From contig JAADVB010000053.1 in the NCBI GenBank assembly GCA_023334545.1, positions 24,282 to 88,281 of the forward strand: a DNA stretch of 64,000 nt. The letters are read 5' to 3'. The DNA is from Salisapilia sapeloensis CBS 127946. Lineage: Eukaryota; Protista; Oomycota. Positions 4,254 to 31,087 of this stretch are shown in pieces. Both the position numbers and the translations under genes were made by a program. A model generated the notes under the pieces. It was given only the letters and a program-made list of their open reading frames with translations. It made no database searches and was not told where the DNA came from. The first letter of the stretch is position 1, and every line of letters begins with the position of its first letter.

Positions 4254-6281
4254 ATGCCGACGGTCGGTGTCAAGCGCGATGAGCTCTTCGCTGCCATGCA
4301 GCAAACGTACACGGACGACGAGTTCGACAAACTCTGCTTCGAGTTCGGCATCGAGCTCGATGACATCACGAGCGAGCGACAGCTCCTCCAGCGCGAGCAA
4401 GGCGAGCAAGCGCAAGGAGGCGAAGACGCTGTCATCTACAAGATCGACGTCCCTGCGAACCGGTACGACTTGTTGTGCGTGGAAGGTCTAGCTCGTGCCC
4501 TCCGAATTTTCCTCCAGAAGGAGTCTCCCCCGACGTTCCAGATCAAGCCTCGATCCGGTGGTAATCACAAGCTCCATGTCAAGTCTAGCACGCAGGTGCG
4601 TTCCTATCGTCTTTGTATTGCACTAGTCAGGAGATTTATGTGTTGATGAGTAGCAAGTGCGTCCGTACATGGTGTCTGCCATCCTCCGCAACGTCCGCTT
4701 CACGCAAGAGCGTTACGACAGGTGCCTTCTAGCATTCATTTATTCCTATCTAGACACATAACTGATCTCTTTCGTGTCAATGTAGCTTTATTGATCTCCA
4801 GGACAAGCTTCACCAGAACATTTGTCGTCGCCGTACGCTCGTGTCGATCGGAACGCACGACTTGGACACGACTGAAGGTCCTTTCACCTACTCTGTACGC
4901 TCTCTCTTCTGCATCTTTGTATAGAAGCATCCTAATGATACACACGTAGGCTGAAGCACCGCAGGAGATCAACTTTGTGCCGTTGGGTCAGTCGAAAGAG
5001 TTCATGTCGAAAGACTTGTTGGATATGTACAAGACCGACCCGGCGTACAAGCACTTGAAGACGTATCCGGACATTATCTACGACTCACCCGTGTACCCAG
5101 TCTTTAAGGACAAGAACGACACGGTCCTGTCCATGCCTCCGATCATCAACAGCGAGCACTCGAAGATTACGTTGGACACGAAGAACGTCTTGTTCGACGT
5201 GACGGCGACGGACATTACCAAGGCCAAGATCGTCCTGAATACGATCATCGCCATGTTCTCCGAGTACTGCGCTGAGCCTTTTAGCGTCGAGCCAGTGGAT
5301 GTCGTGTACGAAGACGCCTCGCACGGCAAGTCGGAGACGACGCCGGACATGAGCCACCGTCTCGTGGAGGTGGAAGTGAAGGACATTTTCTCCATGCTCT
5401 TCGGCAAGAACCAACCTGTTGACTTGGACGTCGATCGTATCTGTCAGCTGTGTGACAAGATGCAGTTGGGAGCCGAGAAGAAGGGAGACGACAAGATTGT
5501 TGTGGATGTGCCTCCTACGCGTTCCGACATTCTGCATCCTGTGGATGTCATGGAAGACGTCGGCATCGCATATGGCTTCAACAACATCCCACTCACGATC
5601 CCTCAGACCATGACGATCGGTCAGCCGCAGGAATTGAATAAACTCGGAGATTCGTTACGTGAAGAGATCAGTCGAGCAGGGTACATGGAGCTACTGACTC
5701 ATGGTCTGTGCTCTCACGACGAGAACTTTGCGTTCTTACGTCGGCAGGATGATGGCAAGAGTGCCGTCGTCTTGTCTAACCCCGCGACAATCGAGTTTGA
5801 AGTCGTACGAACGTCGCTTATGCCAGGCGTCCTCAAGACGCTTCAGAACAACAAGAGCATATCTGTCAAGGAAGGACTCAAGCTCTTTGAAGTGTCCGAC
5901 GTCGTGCTACTAGATGAAGACTCGGATGTCGGAGCACATAACGACCGACGCATCTGCGCTTCGTACACTGGTCACACGGACGGCTTCGAGGTCATCCACG
6001 GACTCGTCGATCGGATCATGCAGCTGCTGGACATTCGTGCCGTGGTGGAGAACCCATCCGAGGCGCAGAAGGCGGCGCAGAGCTATGAAGTCGTGCCGTC
6101 TGATCGCGAAACGTTCTTCCCTGGACGCTGTGCAGATATCATCCTGTACTCGCGCAAGGACGGGAAGGAGACGAAGCAGACGCTTGGATCCTTTGGTGTG
6201 TTGCACCCAGAGGTGTTGCGCAGCTTCGAGCTCATTTACCCGACGTCTGTGCTCGAGATGGAGCTCCAGCCATTGGTGTAA
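4254..6281 (+). CDS. FARSB: Phenylalanyl-tRNA synthetase beta subunit (cytosolic); 3 introns
   Basis: [85 protein letters not shown]. Confidence 0.97.
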
Positions 6282-6384
6282 TGAAAGAGCTATGAATAGC
6301 AAGACGGAAATAGCTGTCGAGATGCGAGTAGTCAAGAGAGAGGAGTAGAAGGCAATAAGACTACGTTTGCATTTTCAAAAGGCA

Positions 6385-7003
6385 TGTCTTCCAAGGATCA
6401 CGAGCTAGATGAACTAAATGATGCCATGGTGGTGTGCAACCCGCTTACCTACGGTCAGAAGACCAATTGGTATCTGCTCTTTTGGTCTTGTAGACACTTG
6501 TGTTAGGTCGTCTTATCGGTTCCTTTGGATGTAGGTCGTCTACCAATGCAGCGGCCAGACAGACCGCTGCTCAAGAGGCAGAGTACGCTAGTAAGCTTCC
6601 GAATCAGTTCGTACTGACGGACAAACGAGACCAGCAACGAGCTTTTGCTGCAGCTGCAGAGGCGGCGAAGCATCCGCCGAGACCATTGCGACCGGATACG
6701 CTTGATTCACCCGAACGAAAGAGTGATCGTGGAGAGCAGAGATTGTTGCCGGAGGAAGTGGTTTCAAATCAGCAGAACGCTAGGATTCCAAAGGCGAAAC
6801 GGAGTAATATGGATGGAGTCTTGAGAGGTATACCGAGAGATAGCTCGGAGCTCAAGTCGACGCAAGGTGATGCGTATGAATACTGCAACGAGATGGATCG
6901 TATGAATCGCGATAAGAATACTGAGCACTTTCGCAAGCGTGACGCGTACTCGGAATACGTCGAGGCGAGAGCTCGATTCAGTAAGATGCATAGTGTCAAT
7001 TAG
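6385..7003 (+). CDS. Hypothetical protein, about 185 aa; one intron at about 6471-6534
   Basis: ATG at 6385 (MSSKDHEL) splices in phase (TG|G) into ORF 6500-7003. No family recognised. Confidence 0.6.
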
Positions 7004-7094
7004 CATGCAGCTAGTCTCTAAAGAACTGGTACTCTACATTAAACTGCTTATGGCTATCGTTTCTCTTGCTCTATTGTCTTTACAGTTCCATAAC

Positions 7095-9560
7095 TCATTC
7101 TGCGTCTTGCACGCTTCTCGTCGCACTATGATACGATTCCTCCGCTCCACTGTCCTTGTCTTCGATGGGCTCACCTTCCGTCTTTATGGCCGATTCTTCC
7201 TCTTCTTCAGCAACACCAGGATGGACAGAGGGATCCGCCGCTAACGCAATTGAAGACAGAGACTCTGCTTGGGCAAGCTAAGAATGGTGTCCGTCAATAC
7301 TGATGAGGAACTTATGCATGGAATATAGAATCGCTACCTGCTGCTTGGCATCTGCTAACGCTGCAAAAAGAAAGTCTTGATGCTTTTCAAAGTCCTTCTT
7401 TCCACGAGAGCTGGCAAGACGATGGATACCGTTATTCATGTCCTGATTGTCATCGCTGCTCTGTAAGCCGTCCTCTCGACGTCCTTTGCCATTCACTTTC
7501 CTCGTTTGCTGTCGTTTGTCTTTTACAATGCCCCTCTTCCCCGTATGTCTTGTGCTTGCATTATTTGTCTCCGGGAGACGCTGCACGGCTGTATAAGGAT
7601 TCTTAATGGAACGCTTCATGGCGCTTGTGTCCGTTTGAGCAACTAGTTCGGACACAGAGCCGACTGCTTTACTGATCGAAGCGTCGTTGCTAGAATGAGC
7701 CAACCTGGAGATGACATCGGCTTGATGCTTCTTGGATTTTTCAGTCCGTCGTTGAGCATGCTCCAGAGCTGTCGCAGTCTCGATCATGTACTGTAGAGGA
7801 TGACCAGTAAGCCCAACTTTACCCTCAGACAGCTCTTGCAAGTATGCTTCCTCTTTGCCAAGCGTAGAACTCTGCTTTTTGATTGTCGAAGTTGGAGGTA
7901 TGTTGTCCATAGATAGAGCAGGCAGCGTCGGTGCTGATGGAAATCGATTAAGCGACAATACCTTGTCACTCACCGATAAACCTGGCAATGTTTCCCCCTG
8001 CTCATGATGAAAGTGTGATACGGGTTTCCACGCGGATGCCGGAGGTTTCTCCTTTCTCCTCGAATTGCTGAATTCAATGCAAGAGACGCTCCCATTCATC
8101 ATGTTGTTCTCTAGTGCTGCATCAAGTGGATCAAGCGGGTCTAGCATTTTGCTCCGCTCCGTGCGATGCCAAGTTGGTCGTAGAATAGCTGGCGCAGACT
8201 GTCGGATAGAATTACTTTCCAACGAAGTTGTCATGTAGTCAGAGTATACAAGGCAGCAGCGTTCACACATGTAAGCTTGTTTATGAAGGAATAGCGGATC
8301 ATATCGATGACGTTCGAGTTCTTCCGCTGTCAAGGACGGATGTAAGAATTTCAGCACGGGAGGTACCAGTAGTTCCTTTTCATCTAGTCTCGTATGCTGC
8401 GTTTTTCCGGCAATGTATGAATTCCGCTTCGCATGTTCATGAAAATGCATGATTCCAAAACCAACTCCGCCGGCGGCATCTATCAATTGCTGGTCTGGCG
8501 GCCACTCTATAGCGAGTCCGTCTTTGTCATTCACTTTCCACTTCAAAAAACGAAGAAACCGCATGAAATGTTCCAGCACTGCCTTGTACGGAACTGGCAT
8601 TAGCCTTCCATCAGATATGACTTGACCACAACTTGTGCATCTTTTCTCGTCCTCATCATTTGCTGTCACAAAGCTGTCGGAAGCTTTCATTTTCAATGGG
8701 GTGGGAATTGCTTTCGCATCGCCGACTATATCTAAAGGCTTTATCGGAGCACCTGATGCACTCGTATCCAAAAGCCTCATCGATGAGCACCATAGCAACC
8801 ACAAACGATCCTCCGAGTCGTTCTTAAGATGCAGTACCATTCGTGCTATCCTGTATTTGTGGTACGAAACTTTGGTGACATGTTCCACAACGCGCTCACA
8901 TAGCTGCTGAACATCGCCTGGTAACATGGCTCCACGGATCGGCTCCGTCCGCGCACTGACCTCATCACCGTCGAATGTAACAGCTCGTTCGAATGCGCTG
9001 TACCTTTGGTCATGAACGTTCTTGCTGTTCACGCGACGTTCAAGTAAGCACACTTTTGGTGACCAAATGACTCGGATGGATGTGTTTGTCGATCCCTTCG
9101 GAAGCACAAACTTCTGCAGGATACCATTAGGCATCTTTTGTCGATTGTAGAGAAACTCTCGAAGCATGCTTGCAGTAAAGTACTCGATGACAGTATTGAC
9201 GCTCGTACCTGGATCATCATCGAAGCCTGGCACTGGGGAAGACGCCGACGAAGATGACAGTTGAGATGGCACATTAGGATTCCCCAAGTAAATGTAGTAC
9301 GCGACAATGTCAGTGGGACTCTTGGATTTAGTGAACTCGTGCTCAATCTGGGGGTTTGTCAGGTTCGATCGGTTCTTGCGTTTAATTTTGCCCGTGCGAA
9401 GGCTGCTAAAGTACCACGCTGACGGTTGTGTCGACCGAAAGAGTATCGTAGATGGAATGAAAACACGTTCTGGCCCACCTCCAAACTCATCTTTGCACCA
9501 GAGAAAGTAAAACAAATTCTCAATGAGGCCATCTCCTTCCAGCGGTAGCGGCGTCGACAT
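7095..9560 (-). CDS. Uncharacterised protein with a possible ATP-grasp-like N-terminal region and Cys motifs
   Basis: 760-aa ORF plus a short acidic terminal exon. Motifs GILQKFVLPKG..IRVIW, CTSCG and MCERCC. Confidence 0.7.
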
Positions 9561-23863: not shown

Positions 23864-24465
23864 CTAATGGTCTTTTTGCTGCCGAAGAGAGTTTATGACA
23901 GAAGAAATGCCAATGTATGAATGTAAGGGTGTCTCAATGAAGCGAAGACGATTCCAGAACGAGGTAAAAGGTAGTCCGATGCAGTGTAGATGCAGATGCG
24001 ATACGGATGCAAATGGAGGTCGGTGGAAACCAAACCTAGAGTACGGTATAGAATGGTTAGCAAGGTATGATCGGTATTGCAATTCGAAATCTAACCTGCA
24101 GTCGGATGATGGGTTGTAGCCTTCTTTAGTCATCATCTCCTTTCCTGTCTCAAGCATGTGCTCTACTACAATTGACACATCGGTCACTGCCTTGCTCCCT
24201 TGCCTAGTGCAGAGTATAGGAAGACATACACAGTTCTGTATCGTTCGCTTGGAGTGCATCCACGTTGTCGATATGCCTCTTGGGGACGATGAGCAAGTGT
24301 TTGGCTGCTCTTGGACGGCGATCTTGTATTGCAAAGACGGTCGAGTCCTGCATAATACTGTTACGAGACCTCTCATGCATCTAAAGAAGCCAAACGTACC
24401 TCGTAAAGCACGCGTTGCCGAGCTGCCAAGGCCGATAGATCACAGAATATGCATTTCGCAGCCAT
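23864..24465 (-). CDS. HINT3: Histidine triad nucleotide-binding protein, HINT3-like; 2 introns
   Basis: MAAKCIFCD, KHLLVIPKRHI, RFGFHRPPFASVSHLHLHCIG. Confidence 0.88.
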
Positions 24466-24923: not shown

Positions 24924-27900
24924 ATGCTCTTTGGTCCGCAGTACGACGATGATGTGAATGAACGGCCGGAAGGGACTTCGACGACTGGCCCGCCTTCTCG
25001 ACGTAAGAAGACGTCGAAAGTGAAGCACACGCGGGATACCGGTGGGTCCAAGCCTGCGTCTCGTTCCAAGCGCCAGAACACGAATGGCGTCATGTCTAGT
25101 CCTACGTCCAAGACGTCCAATGGGTTCAACGCCAATGGTACTGCTCAGCACAATAGTAGCGCGACAGCCAAGCCACGGCGGCATGAAGCCAATCGACGGA
25201 CGAATATTACGTCGAGTCGAAAGAAGCACGTCGCGTCCGTCGAGCCGTTGCCGCCGACGAATAAAGAGACCATGTACGAGACCGTGTGGAAGCATCTGAA
25301 ATTCCGTAAGCACGTTATCAAGTTAGCGTGGGCGGGGAGCGAGAAACCCATTTGCGTCACGGGTGTCGACGGCTTCCTCGCGTCATGGATCGCCTGTGAG
25401 CTCTTGACAGCAGGATATAGAGTCCGAGGGACTGTGCAGAACCGCAAGGACGACGTCTCCGGACTCACATCGCTACCTCAAGCGCACAACTTTACAGTCG
25501 TCGAGACTTCGCTCCTGACGCCGGAAGCCTGCGACTTGGCTGTGCAAGGTACGGCTTTATTACGATAAAGAGATGAAACGAGTATTAAAGGTCTAGTATG
25601 TCTATAGGTTGTGAGTTTGTCATCCACACGGGAACGCCTTCGTCGTGCTCGGTGCGAGATCCTCTGTCGGAGCAGCAGGAACCAGGCGTCCACAGTATCG
25701 GCAGCCGCATGCATTGCATCATACCGATGATGACCAACTTTATCCAGGCATGTGCTCGTGCTCATATCAAGCGCGTGGTCTTGACGTCGTCTATCGCTGC
25801 CATGGCCGACTCGGTCTCCCCCACGTCGATCATCAATGATGCGTGCTGGAACACGACGTCAACTTTAGAGCGTAATCCTCACTTTCTCAGTCTGAAACTA
25901 GCAGAAGAAGCTGCGTGGCAGCTCGTGGACCAGTTGCCGAAAGATCGCAAGGTGGATCTCGTGACGATCAACGCCGGCACGCTCTTCGGTCCTGCGCTAT
26001 CCAAGTCGAAGTTGTCGCAAGGTAACCAGATCATCTTTGACCTCGTGACTGGACAGTTCTCTGCGCTCGTGGATCTCAACTGGAGTATGGTCGACGTCCG
26101 CGACTGTGCTCGAGCGCATATCCTCGCACTTGAGAATAGCGAAGCGAAAGGACGATACGTATGTGTCCACAAGAGTGTCTGGATGAAGGAGATTGTCGAG
26201 ACGCTTGCGTCGAATGGTTATAGCGGTCGAGATTTACCCTGGAAGGTAGGTCTCCCGAACTGGGTGGCGCGCCTCCCAGCGTATTCACTGCAGCTAGGTC
26301 AAGTAGGCTGCTCGCTCTACGCGCGTGATCCGACATATCCTCGAGCGTCGCCTTATTTGAACGACAAGGTCGTGGATCAGCTGAATCTGCTCTTCCGAGA
26401 CGTTCGCGAGACGATCGTCGAGACGGCGAATGATCTGCTCAAGTGGGGCTACATTAAGCCATGGGCAGAAGACCACGAGACGAGTGCATGCACGTGCTGC
26501 GGCAATACATTTACGTTCTATCGTCGTAAGCACCATTGCCGAGAGTGTGGAGAGATCATCTGCGGCGTGTGCTCCATGTCTCGAGCTGTCGTGGAAGGCA
26601 CGGAAGGCAAGGCTCGTCTGTGCGACCGGTGCGTGAAGAACTCCGTGCCTGGGCTCGTGACGATGCTCAAGGAGGATGATCCGGATAATAAGCGCAAGGC
26701 AGTCGTAGCGCTCGAGTCTCTCATGGAGAACGCTTCGAACCACGACTATGTCACTCGTTTCGATGGCATCCGCTTCTTACTCGAAGCGCTGCATCTACAT
26801 GACGAGACGACGGCAGAACATGCTGCTGGAGCCTTGTTTGCGCTTAGCACAAGCGTCTCAAGTAGTCTGCAGATGGTGCTGGAAGGTGCTGTCCTTCAGA
26901 TGCTCGAGGTGGAGGAGACGACGCGTACGTGGGCCTTGTGTCTCCAAGCACTGCGTAACATTTGGAAACAGATCAATCGCGATGACTTTCGACGTATGTT
27001 GCATGCCGTGTCGCGAGTGTCTTCGGAAGGATCGATGCGAGGAAATGTCCTCTTGACGTTTGTCCACATGATGGATCCTCGAGAGATGCCTTCTCTCCTA
27101 CCGGAAGGACTCGTGACCGTTCTCTATCAAATGTTGCAATCTCCAGATGATTTTTCCCGCTGTGCTGCAGCGCATGCGATTAAGCACTTGGTCCCAGTGG
27201 ACTATGATCCAGACCTGACGATCGAAGTGCCTCCATTCGACGTGGACAACCATGAAGAGTTGTTTTTGAATTCGTCTCTCTCCGATCTGCAGTTCCTCGT
27301 GAAAGGCCACATCCAGCCGATCAATGCACACAAGGTCGTTCTTTTCTTTCGCAATTCGTACTTTAAGAACATGGTTCGCTTCGGCTCTGCTTCGAGTCAA
27401 AAGGCCATGATCGAGATTGATAACTGCAGCTACGAAGTCTTTAGCATCCTCCTTCGATTCCTCTACACTGGTGAAGTGGACATTACGCCAGATGTCGCGG
27501 AAGAGCTGTTGCGTGCAGCATCCTTCTATTGTGTCTATGAACTGCAGAAACGAGCGGAAGCTTTCTTAAGTAGTCAGATTGATGTTGCGAATGTCGTCGA
27601 CTTGCTATCGCTTGCGGAGGAGTGTCATGCCGTCGACTTGAAGAAGAACTGCGTCCCGTTCTTGATGAAACATATACATGACGTCGTCCGCTTACCAGCT
27701 TACGAGGAGCATCGTGTGCGGTCGACGGAAGAAGTGCTCAAGGCGCTCGCAGGTATGCTCGGTCCGGAGTGGGAGGCGAGTCTGTCGGCGCTCAAGCAGG
27801 AGATGGAGGGCTCACCGGTCGAGTCGCTGGCTGGAGACGACGTCAAGGCACCGTCGTCACTTCCACGTTCCGGAGCGCCGAGGGCTGTGGAAGTGGATGA

Positions 27901-28117
27901 AGAAGGCAACTACGTCCTGTCGCCCAAGTTCCTCCTAAGTCCCGTGGCGCCTCGAAGTACCGATAGTCGCCAGCACTCGTTTGTCGAGTCGCCCCGGATG
28001 CGCGGCGTGGAGGATCCGAGCTACCTACCTCAACTGAGTCCCAACGCGTCGTTCTTCCAGCGTCCGAGGAACGTATCGAATGACTTTTCCGAAGGCATCT
28101 CGGAAGGTGTGTGTTAG
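24924..28117 (+). CDS. Fusion: low-complexity N-terminus + extended SDR (DFR/CCR-like) + FYVE + ARM-like + BTB/BACK
   Basis: CVTGVDGFLASWI..GYRVRGTV, RVVLTSS, WAED..C..C..F..RRKHHCRECG..C..CS, then an ARM-like helical region, then SDLQFLV..INAHKVVLFFRNSYFKNM. Intron at about 25550-25608. Confidence 0.92.
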
Positions 28118-28293: not shown

Positions 28294-31087
28294 ATGAGTT
28301 TCGACAAGGATGACGCGAGAGATGGTGTGTATGTGCAGGTTGGGAATGCATCTACAGGTGCTAGTTATCGCATCTTGCTTGCTTCGAACGAGTATGTCAG
28401 TTTATTGTCTTAGCGTTTTAGCTTCCGAGCTTTTACGGCTTCTTATTGTACTTTTATATCTCGATACGATGCTTATGCATGTGTTGTGTTAGTGTGACCG
28501 TGGAGAAACTACGTGAAGAACTGTTTCAAGTCAGTAGCGTGGCACCGCGAGATCAGATTCTGCTCGGCGGACCTCCTTTTTCTCGCTTAGATCCGCGAAG
28601 AACGATCAGCACGTACGACGTCACGTCTGTACGTTGATTGCCATGTATACAGCGATTGAAAGAGGTCTTATACAGCGTGCGTAGGAAAATAAGCAAGTCT
28701 TCTTATACGACAAGCGGATGCTGTCTCAGGAGAACCCAACACCTCCAGAGACACAGCTTGCACCCACACGCGTCCAACGTATGCTGCCAAGTACAATCTA
28801 TCTTGTAACTATGCTCATATCATTTGTGCACGTAGCGGCGGAGGCTCCCGTCCAGTCGTCGGAAGGCTCGAAGCAGCTGAGTGAGTCTTCTAGTCCACTT
28901 CTTCGGGCATTAGCAGACTATGAATCTCACTTCCAGGTACAGGTGCGGCAAAGCCAAGCACTCGAACAGAGTACACATGCGAATATGGAAGCTTGTGCAC
29001 AGGCTGCAAAGGAACTCGAGGTGCAGTCCCAAGCAATTGACGCTGCCATCTCGAACCTCGAGATATTTAAAGTATCCATGACAAAGCACTTTCGACCGTT
29101 CTGGGACGACTTTACCACTGCCCAAGACCATCACAAGCATCTTTTATCCAACTTTGACACGTACTTGGAGGCTCTAGCAACTGTTGAGCTCCATCCGTCG
29201 CTCGCGACGTCCGAGAAAAAGACCTTGTACGACTGCATTCCCGTCGATCGAGAGCGAGAGTGGGCGACACAGTGTCAAAAGTCTCAGGAGCATGTTCTAG
29301 AACAAGTGGAGAAGCTTAAATCTATGCATGAGAGCGTCGAGAAGCAAGTGACGGAGCTTGTGGAAGCGCAGAACAGTGTATCTGGACATTGCTCTGGTGC
29401 GTCGAAAGCTCTAGAAGAGATGAAAGAGCATGCGAAAGTTCAGGCGGAGATCACGGCGAAGCTGAATGCGAATCTCGAGTACGTGATGCACAAGATCTCC
29501 GAGACGTCGTCAACGCTAAGTCAATCGAATGCCATGCACGCATCGTCGAATGCATTGGAAGTATGTCGAAATATTGATGAGCTCTATCGGGAGCAGCATG
29601 ACTTAGTTCCAACCTCTGAAAGTCATGCGGAGGAAGTCATCAAGCGTCTCGAGCGCGTTGCACAAGTAAAAAACTCGTTCTTTTCGACCGTCCATTCGAG
29701 TATGCGTCAAGTGTCTTCATCTCAATCTCAAATCCGAGACTTTGAGAGCTCTCTGACGATGCTCAAGGAAGCATTAGCAGCTCAGAAACGGCACTTTGGA
29801 GAGCTAGAGCACTTGGAGAAACTACCAGACGCATACGAAGCTTGTCTGGAAGAGATTGTCCGGAGAAGACGTTATGGAGTTATGTTTTCGAATCGGATTC
29901 AGACGATGGCGGAGGAGTTAGCACAGCTACGGCAGAGAGAAGTGCAGGCTCGAGAGAGTTTCCTACAGAGCTATGGACAGCACTTACCTCGAGAGTTTGT
30001 GCCTGGATTAGCCGAGAAGCCGTCGCATTGTGAGTTTCGAATGCGTCCGTTCGATCAGGATTTACCTGACGTTGGCGACGTGGAGCTGGAGGACAAGGCG
30101 GATGGGAGTGACGTGGATGCGCAGGCACTGGCGAAGAGGTGCAAAGAGTTGGAAGCAAAGGTGGCTGAGCTAGAGAGTCAAGTGCGTGCGTCTGATAAGA
30201 AGGATGTGTCGGAGAGCGTCGGGTCGGATGCGTCCAAGGCAGGAGACTCTTCCTGTGAGTTCCCGCTGGTGCTGGCGCTTGCAGGGGAGATGAGCCACGC
30301 GTCGGACGGGTCCGAAGGAGAGCACAAGTTGGATGCGAATGGAAGTAGCAGACGCGATCAGGAGATGGCCAAGCTTGTGCGGGAGAACCAAGAGTACTTG
30401 TTGAACGCTGCGGCGTTTGAAGGGGAGATGAAGGAGAGTATGCGTCGAGAGAAGAATCTGCAAGAGGCGCAGGCAAATCTGCAGCAGTCAGTCCAGAGTC
30501 TGCAGATCAGCGTCGGTGTTCATAAATCGTCACTTGTCAAGGTGTTGGACTTGTTGGAGCTGCAGGTCGAAGGAGATGTGGACGAGTACCTCAAGTATCA
30601 TATGAGTGATGTGGAGGAGAGGATCCAGACGCTCGTGACGAGTAAGGATCGAGAGCGTCAGTTGGAGCAGGAGCTCGAGGAACAGGAGCAGAAGGTGCAT
30701 GAACTATCGACAAGCGATGAGTCGTTCAAGATTTCCTTCCGTAGCTTTGACGTAAATGACCTCGCGCTGTTTCTACCGACGTCGGCGCCAGGGAGTGACG
30801 CCCAGCGTGTGTACTTGGCGTTCCACTTGGACTGTCCACATCGGTTCTTATCGCAAGAGTCGATCACGTCCTTTAGCACGAGTCTTTCGAATGGCCGAAC
30901 AAGGTACGACCTGTCGCTATCTTTTTGATATGTAGGTCTGATGATTGTATCTAGATATCCTGATTATGTGGTTGGCCGGATCGTCTTCATCGATGAGCAA
31001 GTGGCGACGGAAAGCAACAATCCGTATGCACTTCCTCTCGAAACCACGTTTTACACGCTCACGGTCGCAAGTCTGCATGAAACTTAA
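28294..31087 (+). CDS. ATG11: Autophagy scaffold ATG11/FIP200-like protein
   Basis: N-terminal ubiquitin-like segment (RDQILLGGPPF), ATG17-like coiled coil (KLPDAYEACLEEIVRRRRY), C-terminal claw (KISFRSFDVNDLALFLPT..YVVGRIVFI..NPYAL). Confidence 0.87.

Follow-up and report, generated by a model that had tools for sequence, protein, structure and literature searches.

An oomycete fusion protein that joins an apparently inactive CCR/DFR-type SDR domain to FYVE, ARM, and BTB domains

Gene structure and domain order

The gene described here lies at positions 24924-28117 of a 64,000-nucleotide stretch of the genome of the oomycete Salisapilia sapeloensis CBS 127946 (GenBank assembly GCA_023334545.1, contig JAADVB010000053.1, positions 24,282 to 88,281), which is referred to as the window. 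It encodes a predicted 1,044-residue protein that joins a short-chain dehydrogenase/reductase (SDR) domain to a FYVE zinc finger, ARM-like repeats, and a BTB/BACK region. The SDR domain is strongly conserved and appears to have lost its catalytic Tyr/Lys pair. All features of the gene are on the plus strand.

The sequence of 24924-28117 is that of one two-exon gene. Two plus-strand open reading frames (ORFs), 24924-25568 and 25598-28117, lie in different frames and are separated by a 59-nt GT..AG intron in phase 1 (25549..25607; GTACGG...CTATAG). Splicing from the GT at 25549-25550 to the AG at 25606-25607 joins the frames through a split GGT codon, which gives a product of 208+1+835 = 1,044 residues. 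The spliced junction, ...DLAVQ-G-CEFVIHTGTP..., corresponds to the protein sequence DMAVQGCEFVIHTGTP in the closest database orthologue, P0001. Retention of the intron would truncate the protein because it contains an in-frame TAA at 25566-25568. An earlier sequence-only reading of the locus gave the right outer coordinates, but its single span concealed the intron.

Exon 1 (24924..25548) comprises 208 codons plus one base and is defined by its ORF, its sequence, and the N-termini of orthologues. It encodes an MLFGxQ N-terminus, a basic, variable, and disordered region rich in Ser, Thr, Lys, and Arg, a conserved MYETVWKHL helix (25272-25298), and strands β1-β3 of the SDR Rossmann fold. Exon 2 (25608..28117) is a single open frame of 836 codons that runs from SDR strand β4 through the FYVE, ARM, and BTB/BACK regions to the stop codon.

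Both predicted protein ends agree with the invariant N- and C-termini of the orthologues. The start ATG at 24924 opens the sequence MLFGPQYDDD, and its M-L-F-G-x-Q pattern (24924-24941) is fixed among orthologues. The C-terminal tail (27811..28114) is variable, acidic, and predicted to be disordered, and the stop codon at 28115-28117 follows ...SEGISEGVC. Behind this variable tail, the carboxy-terminal E-G-[V/I/F]-C (28103-28114) is invariant in every full-length orthologue. Neither terminus matches a CaaX box or a myristoylation signal; the fixed ends may serve in palmitoylation, as a redox or degron signal, or as an intramolecular ligand.

The fusion is considered real because exon 2 alone runs from the middle of the SDR domain to the BTB tail in one frame, because more than 40 orthologues share the domain order, and because transcript contigs of relatives span the entire ORF. 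In Logan contigs of 3.26-3.47 kb, which come from four runs and two related species, the ORFs of P0002 and P0024 are complete and have short flanking sequences. One of them ends in at least 26 A residues, and another starts with Illumina adapter directly before a 12-nt leader. These contigs are transcript assemblies of the full fusion in the two relatives. The sequence-only reading had named separate transcripts as the finding that would speak against a fusion; the data show instead a single ORF in exon 2 and whole-ORF contigs in two relatives.

Fold and retained features of the SDR domain

The two exons were searched individually, and the structural model of the SDR domain was built from the nearest orthologue in the database (P0001:140-520) rather than from the joined protein of the window. 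The Pfam Epimerase/SDR score is below the cut-off on both exon pieces because the intron splits the domain between them, and PF01370 is recorded for the full-length orthologues. The exon 2 part of the domain matches solved CAD2/DFR-like, cinnamoyl-CoA reductase (CCR), ANR, and Gre2 structures with E-values down to 6.6e-22.

The AlphaFold2 (AF2) model of P0001:140-520, built from alignment A1, has a mean confidence (pLDDT) of 80.5 and a predicted TM-score (pTM) of 0.85. Its Foldseek matches are Petunia and Medicago CCR, Medicago CAD2, kavalactone reductase, and Vitis dihydroflavonol 4-reductase (DFR), with target-normalised TM-scores of 0.82-0.88. The CCR matches reach 0.86-0.88 by the same normalisation (E-value 6.6e-29), with Petunia CCR at 0.88. 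As modelled, the domain is a structurally complete extended SDR of the CCR/DFR type, with a Rossmann fold and a C-terminal substrate lobe, in agreement with the DFR/CCR-like assignment first made from the window sequence.

The fused SDR retains the glycine-rich motif, the basic residues after β2, HxxxP, TSS, NPG..GP, and DVRD. The glycine-rich dinucleotide-binding motif, whose persistence had also been recognised earlier, reads TGVDGFLAS and lies in exon 1 (25359..25385). In a column tally of 17 fused and nine free SDR sequences, its first two glycines are invariant, and at the third position 13 of the fused sequences have Ala and four have Gly; the same Ala/Gly variation occurs in free SDR relatives. 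The basic residues of RGTVQNRKDD (25425-25454) lie where CCR and DFR bind the 2'-phosphate. The catalytic-Ser motif is kept as LTSSIAA (25781..25801, with LTSS at 25781-25792), and this Ser is invariant across the fused and free sequences. At ETSLL (25503-25517), Ser stands in place of the adenine-binding Asp; this adenine-contact position after β3 is Ser in all 17 fused sequences, as opposed to Asp or Glu in the nine free SDRs.

After β4, the domain contains an 11-residue insertion, GVHSIGSRMHC (25685..25717), that is specific to the fusion family and includes an invariant S-R-x-H-C. It lies in the segment that lines the substrate/nicotinamide pocket in CCR and DFR, and its pLDDT in the AF2 model is below 50. 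Together, the segment HTGTPSSCSVRDP and the S-R-x-H-C insert are almost invariant and found only in the fusion family. The region spanning both (25625-25717) carries several invariant Cys and His residues that are absent from free SDRs; these may bind a metal or a new ligand or have a redox role.

The altered catalytic motif

In classical SDRs of this type, the catalytic Tyr and Lys lie in a YxxxK helix. The corresponding helix of the window protein, NPHFLSLKLAEEAAW (25874..25918), was placed by HMMER, MAFFT, and the motif tally, and it carries the motif NPHFLSLKLAE. His (25880-25882) occupies the Tyr column, Leu (25892-25894) occupies the Lys column, and a Lys (25895-25897) follows at the +1 position; in the spliced protein, these are His300, Leu304, and Lys305. 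HMMER aligns n-p-H-f-l-S-l-k-L-A-E-E-A-A-W with l-w-Y-v-v-S-K-t-L-A-E-E-A-A-W of the Medicago CAD2/DFR-like structure 4qtz with no gaps. MAFFT gives identical gap-free columns for the His, the Leu, and the +1 Lys, and the helix begins at the His in the AF2 model of P0001. The title of PDB entry 4quk describes a K169A mutant of the closest solved homologue.

The substitutions are fixed in the family. The Tyr column is His in 17 of 17 fused sequences and Tyr in nine of nine free SDRs, while the Lys column holds Leu (16) or Phe (1) in the fused sequences and Lys in all nine free ones. Lys occupies the +1 column in every fused sequence. In the larger set of oomycete orthologues covering the site, N-P-H-[FY]-x-x-x-K, or H...K(+5), is present in 45 of 45, whereas 94 of the 95 nearest free-standing SDRs have Y...K(+4) in the form NPY..SK..AE. 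In these alignments, the contrast is far beyond chance. The nearest free SDRs are about 345 residues long and 37-40% identical, carry the motif N-P-Y-Y-Y-S-K-T-L-A-E, and are in some cases named bacterial aldehyde reductases or epimerases. The replacement of both Tyr and Lys, suspected from the window sequence, is therefore seen in the gap-free alignments and in all 45 orthologues, and with this catalytic pair lost the SDR domain is apparently inactive.

A shifted F-x-x-x-K register, in which Phe would be the Tyr equivalent and the Lys would be kept, was considered and rejected. The nearest free SDRs have the same N-P...A-E spacing (NPYYYSKTLAE compared with NPHFLSLKLAE), so a gap is unwarranted and the alignment is unambiguous. 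In the shifted register, Tyr is still absent from 44 of 45 sequences.

Two natural variants are useful for asking whether His can serve catalysis. The Hyaloperonospora fusion protein P0035 reads NPHYLSLK, which restores a Y-x-x-x-K spacing one residue out of register. P0346, a free SDR of 251 residues from an ENA metagenome, reads NPHYLSK; it keeps the Lys but has His in place of the Tyr.

The FYVE finger

The FYVE zinc finger (26462..26641) contains WAED, RRKHHCR, RLC, eight Cys, and a hydrophobic FTFY stretch ahead of the basic motif. It scores 57.9 bits against the Pfam FYVE profile (PF01363; cut-off 27.8, E-value 1.1e-15), and in alignment A2 each signature motif and each of the eight Cys is either invariant or conserved to at least 90%. 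With its WxxD, RRKHHCR, and RLC motifs all in place, the finger is canonical, as originally described. It is of the classic phosphatidylinositol 3-phosphate (PI3P) type, and PI3P binding is predicted. Proteins that match through FYVE alone are RhoGEF-FYVE, TBC-FYVE, and similar proteins.

Oomycetes have many FYVE proteins, with 272 in P. sojae (PMC8233823). A preprint on oomycete FYVE proteins counts 111 domain types and finds classic FYVE motifs in only 16.4% (10.1101/2021.12.02.470886). The window protein belongs to the same large FYVE expansion as the multidomain proteins PsFP1 (FYVE-PX), PsAF5 (ANK-FYVE), and PsFYVE1. Its finger is of the classic type, and the SDR-FYVE-ARM-BTB combination is not named in these surveys: the terms "BTB", "epimerase", and "reductase" have zero occurrences in 10.1101/2021.12.02.470886 and PMC8233823.

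ARM repeats, BTB/BACK region, and origin of the C-terminal half

The region between the FYVE and BTB domains (26642..27196) consists of ARM-like helical repeats, amounting to about 13 helices or 4-5 repeats. Pfam Arm scores 19.2 bits against a cut-off of 20.6, HEAT is also just below its cut-off, and ARM_ARMC5 gives no match. The AF2 model of 26462-28114 (alignment A2) contains about 13 confident helices in this region, with pLDDT of about 90. Foldseek matches the helical region to designed ARM proteins, importin-α, and Vac8, and the BTB-BACK part to SPOP. The all-helical model, these matches, and collinearity with ARIA-like ARM-BTB proteins together bear out the assignment of ARM-like repeats in the sequence-only reading.

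The BTB/POZ domain (27257..27577) scores 77 bits in Pfam against a cut-off of 20.5 (E-value 1.6e-21). The best solved match to the BTB plus 3-box/BACK region is SPOP, with an E-value of 2.2e-16 and an alignment that extends through residue ~343. The 3-box/BACK helices (27578..27810) are placed by this SPOP alignment and are modelled with pLDDT of about 95; BACK_BPM_SPOP scores 19.3 bits against a cut-off of 27.4. The Pfam BTB score and the alignment to the SPOP 3-box agree with the earlier proposal of a BTB and BACK region. In SPOP/BPM MATH-BTB adaptors, as is proposed for the window protein, the domain for clients is N-terminal to BTB; the window protein differs in having no MATH domain and in its sub-threshold BACK_BPM_SPOP score. 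The first third of the BTB domain (27269-27415) has pLDDT below 50 although Pfam matches the whole profile; possible causes are the limited depth of the alignment (20 sequences) and the many indels in the α3-β4 loop.

When 1.84 billion representatives were searched exhaustively by HMMER with the region from FYVE to the C-terminus, the top matches were all oomycete full-length relatives and fragments. The next tier consists of proteins of about 700 residues from green algae, a haptophyte, and plants in which Arm, ARM_ARMC5, and BTB are all present; one of them is a Phaseolus protein named ARM REPEAT PROTEIN INTERACTING WITH ABF2-like. They align in a single stretch over query residues 59-410, with 25-29% identity over about 350 residues. 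Proteins that match through BTB alone are MATH-BTB or RCC1-BTB proteins.

By this sequence comparison, the ARM-BTB half is homologous to ARIA/ARMC5-type ARM-BTB proteins. The homology with ARIA, ABAP1, and ARMC5-like proteins is collinear over the last ARM repeats, the BTB domain, and the subsequent helices. Those proteins have about 9-10 repeats, whereas the window protein has 4-5 and carries FYVE and SDR domains added N-terminally.

Distribution and conservation

The same domain order is found in more than 40 proteins, all of them from oomycetes. The carriers are Phytophthora, Peronospora, Bremia, Plasmopara, Hyaloperonospora, Globisporangium, Pythium, Aphanomyces, Achlya, Saprolegnia, and Thraustotheca. 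The best identity of the window protein to a database orthologue is 74%. Judged from these sequences, the fusion is kept in all sampled oomycetes, from Saprolegnia to Phytophthora.

Among the 1.84 billion representatives, no protein that combines FYVE with BTB or SDR with BTB was found outside oomycetes. The next relatives are plain ARM-BTB, FYVE-only, or SDR-only proteins, with no intermediates. The domain combination, which the sequence-only reading had called unusual, thus appears to be confined to oomycetes.

The SDR domain is 63-67% identical between Peronosporales and Saprolegniales in both Saprolegnian paralogue groups. In the same comparison, identity is 58-72% for FYVE, 47-64% for ARM, 44-68% for BTB, 27-49% for BACK, and 19-38% for the tail. 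These values indicate that the SDR domain is under strong purifying constraint, is at least as conserved as the other domains, and is not decaying. A decaying relic was considered and rejected, given this identity across the deepest split sampled. The invariance of the changed residues themselves argues for a conserved function of the altered pocket.

Saprolegniales have two paralogues of the fusion gene. In S. parasitica, they are arranged head-to-head (L018, 1914-5235 on the minus strand and 6001-9167 on the plus strand), and in Aphanomyces stellatus they are adjacent (locus tags 20106/20107). In one paralogue group, BTB identity is 44% and BACK identity is 27-32%, while the SDR domain stays at 65-67%. 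Searches of the S. sapeloensis genome with the SDR part and with the ARM-BTB part returned only the gene itself plus distant BTB proteins.

Relation to known SDR systems

The closest known systems are the plant CCR/DFR/CAD2-type and bacterial "aldehyde reductase" extended SDRs (PDB 4r1s, 4qtz, 2c29), which have the same fold with TM-scores up to 0.88. Identity to the solved CCR/DFR/CAD2-type structures is 24-30%. Shared features are the TGxxGxxG-type motif, the basic residues after β2, TSS, the NP-x-x-x-S-x-x-x-AE frame, NPG..GP, and DVRD. Compared with these enzymes, the window domain has Tyr changed to His, Lys changed to Leu with a Lys shifted by one position, and the adenine-binding Asp changed to Ser. 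It also has the 11-residue insert after β4 and sits within a 1,044-residue multidomain protein.

NmrA and HSCARG/NMRAL1 sense NAD(P)(H) and control partner binding. Like the SDR domain of the window protein, they have a Rossmann-type SDR fold without the catalytic Tyr; the analogy is one of function only. They represent a different family, whereas the window SDR descends from CCR/aldehyde-reductase-type SDRs. None of the fused proteins has the NmrA profile (PF05368) in its precomputed Pfam list, and the Pfam scan of the window gave no match to it; the records of free SDR relatives do include it.

The orthologues are named in databases as dihydroflavonol-4-reductase, cinnamoyl-CoA reductase 1, NAD-dependent epimerase/dehydratase, or FYVE-type domain-containing protein. 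The DFR and CCR1 names are misleading because the Tyr, Lys, and adenine-binding Asp are changed and because the SDR is embedded in a multidomain protein. Names such as DFR, CCR1, and epimerase would mislead metabolic reconstructions of oomycetes. Literature searches on FYVE with BTB and oomycete, FYVE with dihydroflavonol, and FYVE architecture found no publication describing the protein.

Proposed function and alternative explanations

The function favoured here, tentatively and at slightly under even confidence, is that of a BTB scaffold targeted to PI3P membranes, which would probably be an adaptor for CUL3 and whose SDR domain would bind a ligand without catalysis. The FYVE finger would place the protein on PI3P-rich endosomal or autophagic membranes, and the BTB-BACK region would dimerise and probably recruit CUL3. 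The ARM repeats, the SDR domain, or both would hold the client. Instead of catalysing a reaction, the SDR domain would offer a pocket to a small ligand, a dinucleotide or some other, that gates or specifies scaffold activity, a role proposed by analogy with the atypical SDR sensors NmrA and HSCARG. The sensing of NADP(H) and the binding of PI3P and CUL3 are predicted functions. The sequence-only reading had likewise suggested that the protein could be an endosomal CUL3 adaptor that senses NAD(P) or a metabolite, a proposal that the loss of φ-X-E weakens.

CUL3 recruitment can be assessed from the BTB domain and from the partners available in the genome. Where a φ-X-E motif would be expected, the α3-β4 loop has FGSASS (27380-27397), with S-A-S aligned to M233-E234-E235 of SPOP. 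This loop carries indels among oomycete paralogues, and no orthologue has a Glu in it; in alignment A3, the nearest ARIA-like kin have Y-R-E or Y-F-E. The S. sapeloensis assembly (22.4 Mb in 1,365 contigs) contains at least four cullin loci. One is a CUL3 orthologue (G000:C402) that scores 441 bits to human CUL3 compared with 382 bits to CUL4B, and one further cullin is CUL4-like. A third full-length cullin, L002 (G000:C542:14827-16698), has similar scores to CUL4B, CUL3, and CUL1 (398, 368, and 341 bits, respectively), which do not assign it to a type. From these sequence features, CUL3 recruitment is plausible, given the BTB domain, the 3-box, and an available CUL3 partner, but it is weakened by the absence of φ-X-E.

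Several points weigh against the proposed scaffold. The CUL3-contact φ-X-E motif is lost from the aligned sequences, though Y-R-E persists in the nearest ARM-BTB relatives. Binding of a dinucleotide is uncertain because the adenine-contacting Asp is an invariant Ser, and the SDR fold was obtained from the orthologue P0001:140-520 rather than from the window's own protein. Moreover, the strict invariance of the His, the shifted Lys, and the retained Ser also fits an unusual live active site.

The loss of φ-X-E leads to the alternative that survives best, in which the scaffold is independent of CUL3: the BTB-BACK region would serve only for dimerisation or oligomerisation on PI3P membranes, as in trafficking or autophagy, without assembly of a cullin-RING ligase. 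Many BTB proteins are not CUL3 adaptors. The motif is missing from every orthologue and kept as Y-R-E in ARIA-like kin, the loop differs by indels among paralogues, and BACK is the least conserved folded part of the protein. However, BTB and the 3-box align best with SPOP, the 3-box helices are well conserved against it, and the genome encodes a CUL3 orthologue. In addition, ARMC5, an ARM-BTB protein, is reportedly a CUL3 adaptor. On balance, a scaffold that works without CUL3 is doubtful but has to be taken seriously.

In a second alternative, the SDR domain would be a working reductase that uses non-canonical catalytic residues: Ser and a general-acid His would act with the shifted Lys orienting the nicotinamide ribose. 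The protein would then be a localised enzyme, tethered by FYVE and scaffolded by ARM-BTB, and not a sensor. The Ser, His, and +5 Lys are invariant in all orthologues, the pocket-lining HTGTPSSCSVRDP and S-R-x-H-C insert are almost so, and no other domain is conserved as evenly as the SDR. In other oxidoreductase families, His can be the general acid, and the free SDR P0346 also places His on the Tyr column, with its Lys retained. Nevertheless, Tyr-to-His and Lys-to-aliphatic changes inactivate classical SDRs, as Tyr-to-His and Lys-to-Ile replacements are said to have abolished activity in the Drosophila ADH mutagenesis of Chen et al. in 1993. Furthermore, Tyr, Lys, and the adenine-binding Asp are all changed together, 94 of the 95 nearest free relatives keep Tyr and Lys, and the gene context suggests no substrate, all of which make a live reductase unlikely.

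The idea that the fusion is an annotation or assembly artefact, or that the SDR is a decaying relic on a FYVE-ARM-BTB gene, has the sub-cut-off Pfam scores of the two SDR exon pieces as its one point of support and is essentially excluded by the unbroken 836-codon frame from SDR β4 to the stop, by transcript contigs from four runs of two other species that contain the complete ORF and a poly(A) or adapter terminus, and by more than 40 orthologues with the same domain order whose SDR is 63-67% identical across the deepest split sampled.

The scaffold reading can be extended to an oomycete-specific, PI3P-membrane cullin-RING (or BTB) scaffold whose activity or choice of client would be gated by NADP(H) or metabolite occupancy of the non-catalytic CCR-type SDR. 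This extended form is speculative and, as it stands, rather improbable. If true, the gated scaffold would directly link redox or metabolic state to endosomal or autophagic ubiquitylation, with no counterpart in plants, animals, or fungi.

Every domain of the protein is familiar, but their combination appears to be restricted to oomycetes. The protein is a clean natural example of an enzyme domain that lacks its catalytic pair yet is strongly constrained inside a signalling-type scaffold. If the SDR domain is a dinucleotide sensor, it would connect redox state with the biology of PI3P membranes in organisms whose FYVE proteins have expanded massively. Its lineage restriction makes the protein a reasonable candidate for basic functional study.

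Neighbouring genes

The downstream gene (28446-30928, plus strand) has the same orientation as the fusion gene and encodes an ATG11/FIP200-type autophagy scaffold, with matches to ATG17_like (8.6e-33) and ATG11 (5.8e-14). Both this ATG11-like neighbour and the FYVE fusion concern PI3P and autophagy biology. The two genes are also neighbours in Phytophthora ramorum (L017), whereas in Saprolegnia parasitica (L018) they are not. Synteny is thus the simplest explanation of the adjacency, and a functional link between the two genes was rejected.

The upstream ORF at 23864-24376 (minus strand) contains a histidine-triad (HIT) motif, HLHLHCIG, and has a weak match to DcpS_C (1.3e-06). This motif and match make it a likely exon of a gene for a HIT-family or scavenger-decapping-like protein.

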